Assembly: GCA_002269645.1 (NCBI GenBank)
Contig: NIVC01001657.1
Location: 1-64,000, forward strand
Direction of reading: 5' to 3'
Length of the DNA: 64,000 nucleotides
Source: Macrostomum lignano
Taxonomy: Eukaryota
The position numbers and the translations under genes are program-made. Below, piece after piece: positions 10,895 to 24,858 of the stretch. The notes under the pieces were generated by a model, which saw only the letters and a program-made list of their open reading frames with translations, searched no databases and was not told where the DNA came from. Every line of letters begins with the position of its first letter. Positions within the stretch are counted from its first letter, which is position 1.

Positions 10895-13800
10895 TTAAAC
10901 CAGCGCAAAATCTGGCCAAAAGAACCAAGACCTCCAGCTCTGATCTTTGTCCTGCACTTTTAGCAGCTGGCTGCCCTCCATGAAACAGCCGCTGCACACG
11001 ACAATCTGGCCTTTGACCTGGCAGAGACGCTCCAGACCCTGGGCCATGGTGTCGCGATCCGGGGCGTAGAGCTTTGCTCGGCGCTTCAGATAAGAGATGG
11101 CTGCGAAGTCGTGTAGACGGGCCATTGTGTAAGCGGCATTGTTGGGCAAGGAGCGGAACACCTGCATAGGGAGATACATGTGTAGAAGTCTAAAATCTAT
11201 GGAGACCATAGACACGGTGCACATTCTACCACACAATGCGTGGCTGAACAATCTACGAGCTATTGAAGCCATAGACACGGTGCACATTCTACCACACAAT
11301 GGGCGGCTACAATCTACGAGCTATTGAAGCCATAGGCACGGTGCACATTCTACCACACAATGGGTGGCTACAATCTACGAGCTATTGAAGCCATAGGCAC
11401 GGTGCACATTCTACCACACAATGGGTGGCTACAATCTACGAGCTATTGAAGCCATAGACACGATGTACACTCTACCACACAATGCATGGCTACAATGTAT
11501 CGAGGAAATAGACACGATGGACATTCTACCACTTTGTTTTCAATCTATTGAGCCGAGACCACTACCATTTACAACTGAGTGCAAAGTTTAGAACAAAGGT
11601 TTTTCTCTGCCGATTAAACAGCAAAATTTCCCCCTAAACAAACCTCCTGCATAATTTGCGAGTTCGACCTGGCCTGCGCGCACCACAGATTCCAACCGCG
11701 GCATCGCCCGGGTCAGAAATGAGGGCCTCTTTCTCGGCCGGCGGCACATCCAGATGCTCGCACCAAAGAGCCATTCGAAGGCTACGAACGAAGCCGACGT
11801 CTTCAACACGAACGGCGAGTTCGGAGTTGCGCCAGCCGAGCAGGGAGTGATCGGCGATTCGAGCGCTGCCAATGATGGCGACTCGATCGTCGGCAATGAG
11901 CAGGTTGCTCTGCACGTAGATCTCCTGAGCCAGCCAGCCGTCTGGAAGGCGATCGAATTTTTGCAGGCAGCAAACGCTCAGGTACTCGTGCGGCGCAATG
12001 TGACGCTGCAATAGTCGATGCGTGAGCGAGTCTTCGCCGCGGAATATCGTCTGGTAGAGAAAGTGCATCTGCTTTCGGCTGGTGTAGTCGCCGCGGGAGC
12101 CGCTCAATAATTGACCATCGTGTCGAGGAAACAACGGAATGACGATGTACACCTTGAATGGCTCGCCCCTGCTTCGAGCCTGTAATAGGAAATGAAAATT
12201 TTGTCCACGATTTTTCAGTATCGATTAGGCACCAACGCGCGTTCGATAGTTTTGCCCCAGTAGATTAAAAAAGTAAATTTTTGGCTCCTATTAGGCGCCC
12301 ACCAGGAGACAATCCAGCCCTCCCAATTGGCGCCCATCCGGGAGATATGGGCTTTAGCACCAGGGGCTTTAGCACCAGGGGCTTTAGCACCAGGGGCTTT
12401 AGCACCAGGGGCTTTAGCACCAGGGGCTTTAGCACCAGGGGCTTTAGCACCAGGGGCTTTAGCACCAGAGGCTTTAGAACTAGGGCCTTCATCGCCAGGC
12501 GCTGAAGCACCAGGAGCGCCAGCACTCCATGCGCCAGCATTGACCTTCACTCTATTTGAAGCCTAAATTTATCAAGAAAATCCGGCACACATAGAAACAT
12601 TACCTGTAAAATCCGCTTGTACAGATAGAAGCTAATCCTATTCTTCACTGTGACATCCGTTGGCCGATTGCGACCCTGGGAGATGAACAGCTCGTTTTCG
12701 ATGTACACGAAGCGCTGCGCCTGCGCGATGGCGCTGTAGTACGCCAGCAGGACGCTGTTCTCTTCAGCGTAGCGACTTGTGCCACCCGACCAGCGACCCA
12801 GCGACCTCAGCATGGACACCTGGCAGGTGTGCAGTGCGCGACCCTGGCCGAGCCGCTCCATGCAGTTCACGAATTCCTGGGGCCGGGTACAGGGCGAGGA
12901 AACAGGAATAGAAAGAACCGCATCATGTTGGAGGCTGAGTAGGTTAGCGGTAATCGAGTATGAATCTGTCAAGGTAGCTGGGTTTCGATTCTGCACTGGA
13001 CTTTGAGCTACTCAAAATTGAGCTACGTCAAAAGTTTCGTCAATTTCCTCACACAAAATATGTACAAACATATAAATGCAATAGCTTTAAAATCAAAAGG
13101 GCTAACTAAAATGATTATTCACAATTTTACATCGAAATTGAAGTTCCTCACCTCATCTTCCACCAAAAGTTCGGACTTTTTGCCTTCCTGACGACGAAAG
13201 TGTTGCTGCTGTTGTTGTTGTTGAGGCGGCAGCAGCAGCTGCTGCTGTCTGGCGGCCGCTTCAGCCGATACGAGTCTCCGCAGTCCGGTGGTGTCCTCGT
13301 CCTCGTCTCCCACGGTGTCGCCGACTCCGGCGCCTGAACGCTCGCCAAGATTCAAAAATAGGAAATTTATTTTCGTCTTTGCGCTGGACAAGTTGTCGGA
13401 ATCTGTGTAGACGGGCAGGTCGCTCAACGGGTGCAGATAAGTTCGACGACCGACGCGGGTCTCAATGTCGTCGAGGTCGTGATTGGCGTAACACCGGGGA
13501 GCCAGCAGCGGTAGGTTGAGTAATTTCGTGGCCTGTTCGTAGCTGGTGCAGACGCTGTACACTTTTCGAACTAGCTCGTATGATGAAGGGAATAAAAAGT
13601 TTTATGCAGCACACTAAGCAATCTTGCAATGAGAAAGATGCTGTTGGCTGTATTATAAAACCTTTAACCACGATTAGACGATTGTTTATAGATACAAACT
13701 AGTTACAAGTGTGCTTTCAGCTGTGTCGAAAATAAAATCGATGTTTGTGCCCATTCGTCAGATCTCTCAGCTCCCGTTGGCATCGTCAGGCAATTCGACA

Positions 13801-22800: not shown

Positions 22801-24858
22801 CGGGCATGTACACATTCTGCGCTCCGGTACAACTTTCCAACGTTGATAGACTCTCGAACGTCTGTTTATTGTAAAAGTATTCAGCCAGCTTCGGAGTTGA
22901 CACTCATGGGTGCGAAACGCATGGAAAGCACCAGGCAAATTCGAAAAGTTCGACGCGAGAGATGGGCGAGTTAACCGTTGAGCTACTGACTGAGCGGACC
23001 CTGACATGACGCAATCCGAGCTATCTTTCGTCACGTGGTTCTACACAACCAAACTGTGAAACGACTCGAACCTTCTTGTAGTTTAGCTATACATGTATAC
23101 GTATTAGGAACCGGCGAGGTCAAGCGCGAACTCGGCGTTACGTCGACTGTCTGCTGGCTGACGCCGGCGCCCCGGACACTGCCGGTGGCGCCGCCTTTGT
23201 TCGCGCCCAAGCCATGAAGCGCGCCCTGTGACGCTGACTTTTGCCATCCTAACAGCGTATTTTATTGTTGTTGTTGTTGTTAGGAACAGAAGCATTTTAG
23301 TAGTAGAAACTTACCATTCGACATTTTCGCAGCAACTTATTTATGTCTTCCTACAATTGGCATCGAAGGTGAACAATTGCATGCAAATCGTATAAATATT
23401 GAAGCAGAACTCAAGTCTTAAACTGCACTCACAGCCAAGCTGAGCGTCAGAGTATCTATGGAAGCCACGGCAGTATCCACAACGGCTAAATTATCCACAT
23501 TCAGCTGTGGATCCATGAGCGCACTGGCCACTATCACGTTCAGTTTGATGATGGATTTTTTCAATTCGGCCGGATCTTTAAAGTGCAGATCCCACTGCAC
23601 GTGGCCGCCGTAGCAGGCCGTGAGTCTGCGTGGGTTTGCAGCGGGGGTTATAACTGTCTTAAAGTAAACAGTAAAAAGTAGTTGCATTTTACTACTACTA
23701 CTACTACTACTACTACTACTACTACTACTACTACTACTACTACTACTACTACTACTACTACTACTACTACTACTACTACTACTACTACTACTACTACTAC
23801 TACTACTACTACTACTACTACTACTACTACTACTACTACTACTACTACTACTACTACTACTACTACTACTACTACTACTACTACTACTACTACTACTACT
23901 ACTACTACTACTACTACTACTACTACTACTACTACTACTACTACTACTACTACTACTACTACTACTACTACTACTACTACTACTACTACTACTACTACTA
24001 CTACTACTAATACTACTACTACTACTACTACTACTACTACTACTACTACTACTAATACTACTACTACTACTACTACTACTACTACTACTACTACTACTAC
24101 TACTACTACTACTACTACTACTACTACTACTACTACTACTACTACTACTACTACTACTACTACTACTACTACTACTACTACTACTACTACTACTACTACT
24201 ACTACTACTACTACTACTACTACTACTACTACTACTACTACTACTACTACTACTACTACTACTACTACTACTACTACTACTACTACTACTACTACTACTA
24301 CTACTACAATTCGAGTCGGACTACTTGTAACGACTATGCTGTTGATAAATAATGTAATGCTAAAAATAGCTTGCCTCGCAGTCGCCCCGAGTCCAGCTGT
24401 TCCACAGGTTGTTCATCATCGCTGCTAGTTGAGTCTCTGCGCCGACCGAAATGTATAGGAGGATGCTGCTGCCGATGCGGACTTTGGTTATTCTTGTGGA
24501 ACTTACTGGTCGAGTTGTTTATTTTTCGCTTCTTCGCTCCAGCGCCGCTGCCACCGCCGTTGCTGCCGCCGCCAATTACATCGTCTAGGTCGCTGGCACC
24601 ATCCCCTTGAGCTGCAAAGTTGCGATGCACGTACACCAGAGCCAGTTGCGATTCGTATGGCAATCCCAAGCTAGACTCGTTGAAATTGTAATAAAAGTCC
24701 CAGCCTAAGTGACAGTCCTGCTGCGCCTCACGTTCCCGTTGGAACTGCTGAGTGTTGGCCTCAATTTGTTGGCGGAGCTGCTCTCGACGCATCAGGCTGG
24801 CGTCCGACAGGTTGGCAACCCGTCTGGGCTCGCGCACCTGCGGCTTTCTCCATGGCAT
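10895..24858 (-). CDS. PLD: PX-PH-phospholipase D (PLD1/2 family) gene, ~21 exons, both HKD motifs degenerate; one frameshift at ~11694
   Basis: Exons match PLD1/2 motifs in order: CEFLGISRLSFI (PX end), RWLFVADTFL (PH), FGSFAPSR..AQWYLDG, PNVHVLLHP, HNEKLVVVD, PRLPVHS..ARDAARHFVERWNF, YIENELFIS, YVQSNLLIADDRVAIIGSA, VFRSLPNN; splice phases could be reconciled for every junction traced. Confidence 0.92.
11165..11525. repeat. ~67-bp minisatellite in the last PLD intron
   Basis: Unit CTATTGAAGCCATAGACACGGTGCACATTCTACCACACAATGGGTGGCTACAATCTACGAG, about 5 copies. Confidence 0.9.
12347..12480. repeat. 15-bp tandem repeat (GGGGCTTTAGCACCA)n in a PLD intron
   Basis: About 8 near-perfect copies; explains the spurious GAKAP/LVLKP/FSTRG ORFs. 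Confidence 0.95.
17495..17740 (-). mobile_element. Second copy of the tRNA/CORE-like SINE (PLD intron), partly deleted in the core
   Basis: Reverse complement shows GTAGCCTGGTAGTTAGAGCG, GGTTCGATTC and the same GTCCTTGGACTGAACAGCCGTACGCAGCCTTCAGATG...GTCGGTTGCATATCTGGCCCAAT tail as 5797-6125. Confidence 0.85.
23688..24306. repeat. (ACT)n/(TAG)n microsatellite, ~620 bp, in PLD intron 1
   Basis: Nearly pure trinucleotide run; the poly-Thr ORF is an artefact. Confidence 0.98.

Follow-up and report, generated by a model that had tools for sequence, protein, structure and literature searches.

A phospholipase D1/2-type gene of Macrostomum lignano with altered active-site motifs that probably encodes a non-catalytic paralog

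The DNA analyzed here (the window) comprises the first 64,000 nucleotides of contig NIVC01001657.1 from the flatworm Macrostomum lignano. On its minus strand, from an ATG at 24858 to a TAA at 10897–10895, it harbors a gene of the phospholipase D (PLD) family in which catalytic residues of both HKD motifs are replaced. As judged from sequence comparisons, we consider it probable that this gene encodes a non-catalytic, membrane-associated PLD1/2-type paralog of the Macrostomum lineage that is kept under constraint, and that the single-base frame breaks found in it are assembly indels. Three deposited protein models correspond to parts of the gene. The 358-amino-acid UniRef entry A0A1I8IZT2 (P0001, "Phospholipase D") is identical to the 3′-terminal exons, and the M. 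lignano model P0003 covers part of the middle; an exact look-up of these two returned no contigs. The third, P0204, is a 1,099-amino-acid model of a sister copy of the gene, which a cluster look-up identified as PAA69579.1 (BOX15_Mlig013142g1, Mlig013142.g1) on contig NIVC01001310.1 of assembly Mlig_3_7. The product of the sister copy is therewith deposited, named only "hypothetical protein". The Mlig_3_7 assembly was built from PacBio reads with Canu and polished with Pilon, and its GenBank annotation derives from RNA-seq genome-guided transcript assembly (StringTie/TACO/TBONE) with open reading frames (ORFs) called by TransDecoder (PMC5730564), so that the splice junctions of P0204 rest on transcript evidence. 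These junctions match canonical or GCAAG donors in the window.

To obtain the gene model, P0204 and P0001 were mapped onto the window and the splice sites were then checked. Eleven exons are based on P0204 junctions, the last three on P0001 and one on canonical splice sites and homology, and three further exons and one exon start are predicted. Together with a splice-chain search, this mapping gave about 19–20 exons instead of the ~21 proposed originally. After two single-base corrections, the full exon chain runs through 2,286 codons with no stop and yields a conceptual protein of about 2,290 amino acids.

All exons lie on the minus strand. Exon 1 (24375–24858) carries the ATG at 24858, encodes a sequence 100% identical to P0204 residues 1–158, and is 1 nucleotide (nt) short for its phase-2 junction. 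The intron after it is of the GC-AG type (donor GCAAGC, 24374–24369), as is one other intron of the gene. Just upstream of the start codon lies a 33-bp × 7.5 array (25169–25416), and intron 1 contains a (TAC)206 microsatellite (23690–24307), both detected with Tandem Repeats Finder (TRF). P0204 splices across the microsatellite, which is shorter in the sister copy; read on the coding strand, it is in frame with exon 2 and adds up to about 200 codons for Ser, and ORF finders fuse the array to the gene. Exon 2 (23433–23625), placed by the P0204 mapping, stands at the expected PX position without detectable PX similarity. Exon 3 (23315–23350) is a 36-nt mini-exon encoding EDINKLLRKCRM, present in P0204 and flanked by TGTAG and GTAAGT. 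A "PX" exon at 23040–22708 (ECQLRSWLNTF), taken from a by-eye model guided by human PLD1, proved to be wrong, since P0204 skips it for the mini-exon at 23350–23315. Exon 4 (22184–22595) encodes EFLGISRLSF (22520–22491) followed by a Ser/Thr/Ala-rich insert, and ends at the second GC-AG donor (GCAAGT, 22183–22178). The first part of the PH domain is encoded by exon 5 (21455–21875), with SCCFPF (21744–21727) and RWLFVADTF (21603–21577), as recognized by a custom hidden Markov model (HMM) of PLD N-termini. Its end is encoded by exon 6 (20633–21294; P0204 mapping, 97.7% identity), in which TLDCETP (21287–21267) precedes an acidic low-complexity insert. Exon 7 (20071–20477), supported by the P0003 and P0204 mapping and by the HMM, adds a basic/Ala-rich insert and ends in FGSFAPSRSGVK, which forms the conserved link to the catalytic domain. 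About 330 amino acids of acidic/basic insert separate the PH domain from the catalytic domain.

The catalytic domain starts in exon 8 (19533–19793; AQWYLDGGAY...), where an invariant WW reads NR and LYKE reads LLDN (19601–19587). Exon 9 (19190–19387), present in P0204 and P0003 and bounded by the splice sites CACTAG and CAG/GTGAAG, encodes GTPNVHVLLHPTDPSTG and then Cys-rich sequence. Joined to the first nine codons of exon 10, it gives a Cys-rich insertion of ~57 amino acids (CFALAKDCW...CHCCFPSQKHGTQSRTE) just upstream of the HKD1 strand, which occurs in none of the other PLDs aligned. The degenerate HKD1 lies in exon 10 (18957–19090), followed there by SAVDL (19003–18989), and exon 11 (18442–18675; INDVPTALHS...), intact in the window, opens the long "loop" region. 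Between 18442 and the exon encoding PRLPVHS, the best in-frame, stop-free chain through canonical sites was 18160–17927, 17167–16719, 16181–15837 and 15212–14319. The first three are predicted loop exons with canonical or GC-AG sites. The fourth (14319–15212), whose 5′ boundary is predicted, encodes PRLPVHS (14433–14413) and ARDAARHFVERWNF (14385–14344). The next exon (13152–13570) encodes LNLPLLAPRCY, aligned to YPFLLPKS, and then a Gln/acidic insert; it is outside both deposited models and is placed by its splice sites and phase fit, with its similarity to PLD1 and to the protein P0157 described below judged by eye and by MAFFT alignment. The exon at 12604–12876 encodes LRSLGRWSGG and VYIENELF (12708–12685) and is 100% identical to P0001 residues 1–91. 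The HKD2 exon (11644–12179) contains GSARIADHS (11870–11844) after the motif, and the last exon (10895–11161; VFRSLPNN...WPDFALV) corresponds to P0001 residues 270–358 and the TAA. TRF also reported a 15-bp array at 12349–12514, with a 30-bp length difference between the two copies, and a 61-bp × 4.9 array in the last intron (11206–11504).

Weak HKD1-like matches at 19381–19322, 18192–18073 and 17157–17083 (E = 3.9–32) were considered as possible duplicated or mutually exclusive HKD1 exons. This was rejected, as neither an internal duplication at the DNA level nor Pfam support was found, and according to P0204 the match at 19381–19322 is simply the exon preceding the HKD1 exon; these matches are treated as chance or very old relics. 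The stretch 18192–18016 (predicted exon 18160–17927) also showed weak likeness to the HKD1 segment (MRHYRHFGRTVFLQGHLRDL) and to the DYxxF...KPFxxFxD segment (E = 3.9–7.7). It has no repeat at the DNA level, and the likeness may be due to chance or be a relic of an old internal duplication.

Both HKD motifs read as the original prediction had stated, CH-N-E-K-LVVV-D and YV-Q-S-N-LLIA-D. Translation of 19045–19022 gives NEKLVVVD preceded by CH, in which the catalytic His of HKD1 is replaced by Asn and the Lys and Asp are kept. Translation of 11912–11889 gives QSNLLIAD preceded by YV, in which the HKD2 His is replaced by Gln and the Lys by Asn, and the GSxN that follows reads GSAR (11870–11859). 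When the concatenated catalytic ORF pieces were compared with the PDB by phmmer, they matched human PLD2 (6ohm, E = 3.4e-69) and PLD1 (6u8z, E = 1.5e-61) in three collinear stretches. The alignments agree with both HKD readings and display every one of the neighboring changes that had been claimed, namely HHEK to HNEK, GGIDL to SAVDL, PRMPWHD to PRLPVHS, IENQFF (of IYIENQFF) to IENELF, HSK to QSN and GSANINDRS to GSARIADHS. A two-lobed PLD catalytic domain collinear with that of PLD1/2 is thus present, and a search of 1.84 billion representative sequences yielded PLDs only.

The extent of the changes was assessed in an alignment of 22 HKD-intact PLDs (animals, a fungus and a plant), which contained 96 strictly invariant columns. 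The M. lignano protein keeps 71 of these positions (74%) and has lost 25, including H464, G478/G479, W676, D678, Q780, H893, K895, N910 and N912. By motif, the losses comprise the HKD1 His, the GG of GGIDL, the W and D of PRMPWHD, the Gln of IENQFF (replaced by Glu), the HKD2 His and Lys, both Asn of GSANIN and the WW of the DWWLSPE segment. The retained elements comprise the HKD1 Lys and Asp, the DD/GSA scaffold, RSxxWSxG, RHFxxRWN and DSE. Catalytic residues have therefore been lost while fold-defining residues have been kept. The polybasic RDxARHFxxRWNF segment is preserved as well (in ARDAARHFVERWNF), with the invariant R693, H694, F695, R698, W699 and N700 all present; this segment is described as the phosphatidylinositol 4,5-bisphosphate (PIP2)-binding region of PLD1/2. 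A "PIP2-binding domain" is listed among PLD motifs (PMC3056787).

The altered motifs would be of little meaning if they were sequencing, assembly or mis-splicing artefacts of an active PLD gene, and the assemblies clearly do hold indel errors or polymorphisms. The motif changes, however, are base substitutions and not indels, and the substituted codons are the same in the sister locus (L002) and in two independently deposited protein models from two assemblies (P0204 and P0001); they are not read errors. The HKD1 exon differs between L002 and the window at two positions, both synonymous and outside the motifs. More than 20 invariant positions over five exons are affected, and the canonical paralogs of the flatworm are separate loci only about 40–50% identical. 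We regard an artefactual origin of the motifs as practically negligible.

In HKD enzymes both His are needed, one as the nucleophile and the other as the general acid, and in PLD1 and PLD2 one Lys-to-Arg change is enough to abolish activity. Because the catalytic residues are missing, we infer that the protein would be unable to perform the phosphohistidine mechanism of HKD phospholipases, and hydrolysis of phosphatidylcholine is predicted to be absent. It could still be an enzyme if non-canonical residues, such as the His before the Asn in CHNEK, took over or if it acted on another substrate. Such a view may appeal to the retained His at −1 of HKD1, the HKD1 Lys and the Asp of both motifs. 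It may also appeal to vaccinia virus F13 (p37), a poxvirus protein that needs an NxKxxxxD variant of the HKD motif for its function and for which no classical PLD catalysis has been demonstrated. The F13 pattern is that of HKD1 here and is taken as a lead only. F13 itself belongs to the PLD3/K4 branch and is a small, palmitoylated protein of viral origin. Moreover, PLD-family proteins with altered HKD motifs have been discussed as possibly active, for example Phytophthora PLD-likes lacking the HKD1 Asp (PMC3056787). Nevertheless, with both His, the HKD2 Lys, the GSxN Asn, the Trp and Asp of PRMPWHD and the Gln of IENQFF replaced, and with a Pfam PLDc active-site score of 12.5 bits where 21.9 is the cut-off, retained catalysis appears very improbable.

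Regarding the N-terminus, for which both PX and PH domains had been proposed, the PH domain was recovered and the PX domain was not. Pfam detected neither domain on the spliced N-terminus. A custom profile of the N-termini of 102 animal PLDs matched the PH region with 34.6 bits (E = 5.7e-13; best shuffle 1.4 bits) and also matched the FGSFAP linker. In an AlphaFold2 (AF2) model of P0204 residues 159–533, this region forms six strands and a helix with a predicted local distance difference test (pLDDT) score above 90, and the best Foldseek matches of the model in the PDB are PH domains (SKAP-Hom, SKAP55 and Akt1; template modeling (TM) scores 0.57–0.69). SCCFPF is aligned to the conserved Cys-Cys position of the profile, which we take to be the palmitoylation site of PLD1. 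As for the PX core, the same profile gave −2.9 bits, ranking 686 among 820 shuffles, and when the N-terminal (PX) sequences of its M. lignano paralogs were compared by phmmer, only the FLGISRLSF motif matched. The segment at the PX position was helical or of low confidence in the AF2 model and had no Foldseek PX matches (exon 1 being outside the modeled fragment). EFLGISRLSF, matched by the custom profile, is the sole PX-end/linker motif still recognizable. For comparison, the PX-PH regions of the active paralogs score 140–188 bits with the PLD N-terminal profile. These profile and structure-model results support the view that the PX domain has probably been lost beyond recognition and that a PH domain is present. 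A 69-nt segment in the PH-encoding exon (21670–21602; GC...AG, in frame and stop-free) is removed as an intron in the P0204 model of the sister copy; it corresponds to the PH domain's first strand and loop, so that retention or removal would give two PH variants.

The existence of an HKD-intact paralog in the same genome, proposed for checking in the original prediction, was confirmed by Mlig002054, Mlig010321 and others. At least three HKD-intact groups were found in M. lignano, namely the clusters of P0020 (Mlig010321/025393/032186), P0026 (Mlig002054) and P0021 (Mlig021482). A neighbor-joining tree, calculated from 786 well-occupied columns, places the dead protein together with P0020 and P0026 (89% bootstrap). 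Its C-terminal lobe is 50.7% identical to that of P0026, compared with 32–37% to other animals, and over the catalytic lobes the identity to the closest paralogs is about 40–50%. LRSLGxWSGG, YLSVC and a one-residue insertion before HKD2 are common to the dead protein and the M. lignano paralogs. This grouping and these lineage-specific features showed that the gene arose as a duplicate of the flatworm's own active PLD genes and then evolved fast.

The sister locus L002 is collinear with the window gene and about 98.5% identical. Between the two sequences (12.7 kb aligned), the coding changes comprise 25 synonymous and 14 non-synonymous ones, giving 0.0166 substitutions per synonymous site (dS), 0.0029 per non-synonymous site (dN) and a ratio (omega) of 0.17. 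The binomial probability of such a synonymous excess under neutrality is 8e-8, and the introns diverge by 1.16%. The dN/dS comparison suggested in the original prediction therefore gave a value far from 1, for the N-terminal two thirds of the gene. The predicted loop exons differ between the copies by 6 synonymous and 3 non-synonymous changes with no indels in the predicted frames, and this synonymous excess supports their coding status and frames. In addition, the coding sequence of about 6.9 kb contains no premature stop derived from a substitution, despite only about 40–50% paralog identity, and a neutral sequence could hardly have stayed open for so long. The comparison of the two genomic copies thus showed purifying selection on the coding sequence from the time of their divergence. 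As a limit to this, the segment 14319–11841, which includes the IENELF and HKD2 exons, differs from L002 (approximately 23560–26006) by 1 substitution in about 2.5 kb, compared with about 1.2% elsewhere in the gene, suggesting a gene conversion tract or a collapsed assembly. Because of this near-identity, dN/dS is uninformative for the HKD2 half. L002 also carries 3.3 kb of extra intronic sequence (L002 16800–20149, inserted at window ~17730), including a 35-bp × 35 satellite (L002 17708–18924) and no ORF of 120 amino acids or more.

The original prediction had counted one 1-nt lesion in the gene, whereas comparison of the window with L002, P0204 and P0001 revealed two. The first is in exon 1, where the G-run at 24388–24385 has 4 G compared with 5 G in the sister copy and P0204; no phase-compatible donor that would rescue this break was found by eye on the sequence. 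The second is in the HKD2 exon just downstream of HKD2, where the window has TT at 11695–11694 and P0001 needs TTT (between GDAAV and WNLWC). The sister copy is broken at other sites: a G is missing at window position 18645, which is why P0204 ends early, and a C is missing at window position 12054. All four breaks concern one base in runs of two to five identical bases (G4/G5, GG/G, CC/C and TT/TTT), and every broken site is intact elsewhere (exon 1 in P0204, 18645 in the window, 12054 and 11695–11694 in P0001). Considering that the breaks are 1-nt, located in runs, private to one copy and intact elsewhere, and that a duplicated genome hampers polishing, they are most likely long-read (PacBio) consensus or assembly indels in short homopolymer runs.

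Alternatively, the breaks may be real, and the gene a decaying duplicate, that is, a constrained paralog, already non-catalytic or weakly catalytic, whose copies recently became unprocessed pseudogenes. We consider this unlikely, though deserving of serious attention. It would account for two private frameshifts in each of two copies, for a PX domain eroded past recognition, and for an annotated coding sequence (P0204) that stops at its frameshift. In the exons, single-base indels occur at about 0.6/kb, close to the density of about 1/kb in the introns, as a recent loss of constraint would also give. The DV1 genome is highly redundant: duplicated non-repetitive blocks with an identity of at least 95% add up to 180 Mb (PMC5730564), so that the loss of a copy would be costless. 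However, an omega of 0.17 with such a probability is hard to square with four independent recent disablements, the frame is free of substitution-derived stops, and each broken site has an intact counterpart in another copy or model. Furthermore, the exonic indels are all single bases in runs and most intronic ones are longer, with multi-nucleotide events making up 9 of 16 intronic indels and 0 of 4 exonic ones.

Several further points weigh against a functional protein, beside the private breaks in both copies and the indel densities just described. As assembled in the window, the spliced ORF meets a stop at codon 183. Only the N-terminal two thirds of the gene contribute to the selection signal, and the middle (loop) exons are predictions. 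A protein search with all of the N-terminal and loop ORFs returned no annotated homologs. No ortholog was found in other species among the 1.84 billion representatives, the best non-self match being 43% identical, perhaps owing to missing Macrostomum data. That the gene is transcribed is judged from the RNA-seq-guided annotation of the sister copy and not from inspected reads, and Mlig013142 was not found in the paper texts and supplementary tables checked. On balance, we still lean towards a functional non-catalytic protein. The earlier proposal of a selected non-catalytic role in place of random decay accordingly stands in part: the active paralogs, the low omega, the 74% of invariant positions kept and the RNA-seq-guided model agree with it, and the broken frames, the missing PX domain and the restriction of the signal to the N-terminal two thirds leave its support partial.

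Altered active sites are rare among related proteins. In the set of 321 retrieved PLD relatives, nearly all have both HKD motifs intact, and a canonical His or Lys is missing only from P0157, P0011, P0100 and the gene described here. P0157 is the only other full-length protein with dead motifs. It is a complete PX-PH-PLD of 1,079 amino acids encoded by an uninterrupted ORF (L001, 277–3516) on a 4-kb Logan transcript contig from run SRR32924703, and its motifs read HNEK, GSSDL, PRMPIHD, IEGEYF, HSN and GSAKIQ. It resembles the M. lignano protein in the change of the HKD1 His to Asn and of the HKD2 Lys to Asn and in the altered GG, PRMPW, IENQ and GSANIN, and differs from it in having PX and PH domains at Pfam thresholds, the HKD2 His and a normal length. 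P0157 has lost 11 invariant positions and shares 9 of these losses with the M. lignano protein (odds ratio 19, Fisher P = 6e-5). The shared HNEK, SN, LLDN and TLDCETP raised the possibility that P0157 is an ortholog of the M. lignano gene, which was ruled out by the tree and the segment identities. In the tree, P0157 is joined with 100% bootstrap to a "phospholipase D2-like" protein of Lingula anatina; the two are 55–65% identical in the first two catalytic segments and 50% in the C-terminal lobe, compared with 32–38% between P0157 and the M. lignano protein; the likeness is read as convergence. The simplest reading is that, once catalysis is abandoned, invariant residues serving catalysis only are free to change and the fold stays constrained, and that this has happened at least twice. 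It is possible, as a tentative generalization that we rate as rather less probable than its opposite, that PLD1/2-type enzymes became non-catalytic membrane-targeted proteins more than once independently in spiralians (Macrostomum and a Lingula relative), with the same active-site residues replaced. The loss of the same nine invariant residues in an independent lineage suggests a repeatable route from enzyme to pseudoenzyme.

P0011, from a metagenome contig in the ENA (385 amino acids), is an Asn/Lys-rich protist-like PLD fragment whose HKD1 reads LWSHNEKLVIID and in which GGIDL and IYIENQFF are kept; the change of the HKD1 His to Asn thus seems to recur. P0100, also from the ENA, has RSK in HKD2.

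Compared with PLD1/2-type enzymes, including its M. lignano paralogs, the dead protein has the collinear bilobed domain (41–51% identity to P0020 and P0026 in the C-terminal lobe), the PH domain, the FGSFAP linker, RHFxxRWN, the DD/GSA scaffold of HKD2, the long loop region and the C-terminal domain. It differs from them in lacking both catalytic His, the HKD2 Lys, other active-site residues and a recognizable PX domain, in carrying the ~57-amino-acid insert before HKD1, and in its predicted length of about 2,290 amino acids compared with 900–1,500 in its relatives. PLD5 is a PLD-superfamily member without catalytic HKD residues or PLD activity. The FAM83 (DUF1669) pseudo-PLDs likewise lack catalytic HKD residues and PLD activity and act as anchors for CK1 (PMC6008594). 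By their descriptions, both belong to other branches, PLD5 being a PLD3/4-like type II membrane protein and FAM83 having a single pseudo-PLDc, and both lack the PH domain, loop region and C-terminal domain of PLD1/2. In Phytophthora, PLD-likes, sPLD-likes and TM-PLD are lineage-specific expansions with one modified HKD motif (HKD1 without Asp; in TM-PLD, HKD2 is modified) (PMC3056787). Unlike the protein described here, these non-animal PLD-likes keep the His and Lys of both motifs, some secreted ones have been linked to activity, and they lack PX/PH domains or have transmembrane segments. FAM83 and the Phytophthora PLD-likes were what our literature searches brought up when a description of a catalytically dead PLD1/2-type protein was sought, and none was found, in line with the original remark that a dead PX-PH-PLD of this kind is not known to have been described.

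Returning to the non-catalytic paralog that we favor, its history involved duplication, loss of the catalytic residues and of any recognizable PX domain, and gain of very large low-complexity (presumably disordered) inserts, with the determinants of the PLD fold kept. The protein would associate with membranes through the same determinants as PLD1/2, namely the PH domain, the polybasic segment and the di-Cys motif. Most plausibly it would serve as a phosphoinositide- or phospholipid-binding scaffold, or else it might compete with the active paralogs for their membrane sites and activators. Any particular function, whether sensor, scaffold or dominant negative, is a proposal. Roles of PLD1 and PLD2 that do not depend on lipase activity, for instance scaffolding via PX/PH or via the surface of the catalytic domain, are debated, and the usual probe is an engineered K-to-R mutant. 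A naturally dead PLD1/2-type paralog selected beside active ones would demonstrate a selectable, non-catalytic function of the fold. If such conversions have indeed occurred more than once, a conserved lipase-independent function of PLD1/2 could be maintained alone, and M. lignano would offer a natural separation-of-function allele. The species permits RNA interference, in situ hybridization and transgenesis (PMC5730564). Should the copies prove to be recently broken pseudogenes, the case would amount to an ordinary loss of a paralog, in a genome that is redundant and was recently duplicated. Catalytically dead proteins are already known in the PLD superfamily, pseudoenzymes are common, and the protein itself is in databases under an automatic name.

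Outside the PLD gene, the window contains a ubiquilin gene with ubiquitin, UBQLN1 and UBA domains (52899–56690, plus strand), which is 28 kb from the PLD gene in the window and 8.6 kb from it at the sister copy. A DDE_3/Tc1-mariner-like transposase ORF (35947–37167) and a piece of the ELP1 C-terminal helical bundle (58219–58869) lie on the minus strand, and an 819-amino-acid ORF on the plus strand (2088–4544) has a weak AAA_22 match. Repeat-like stretches, seen only as repetitive ORF translations, occur at 43700–44500, 50800–51400, 54480–55420, 57900–58350 and 59000–64000. The dense tandem repeats of the window fit the simple/tandem repeat content of 15% reported for the M. lignano genome.

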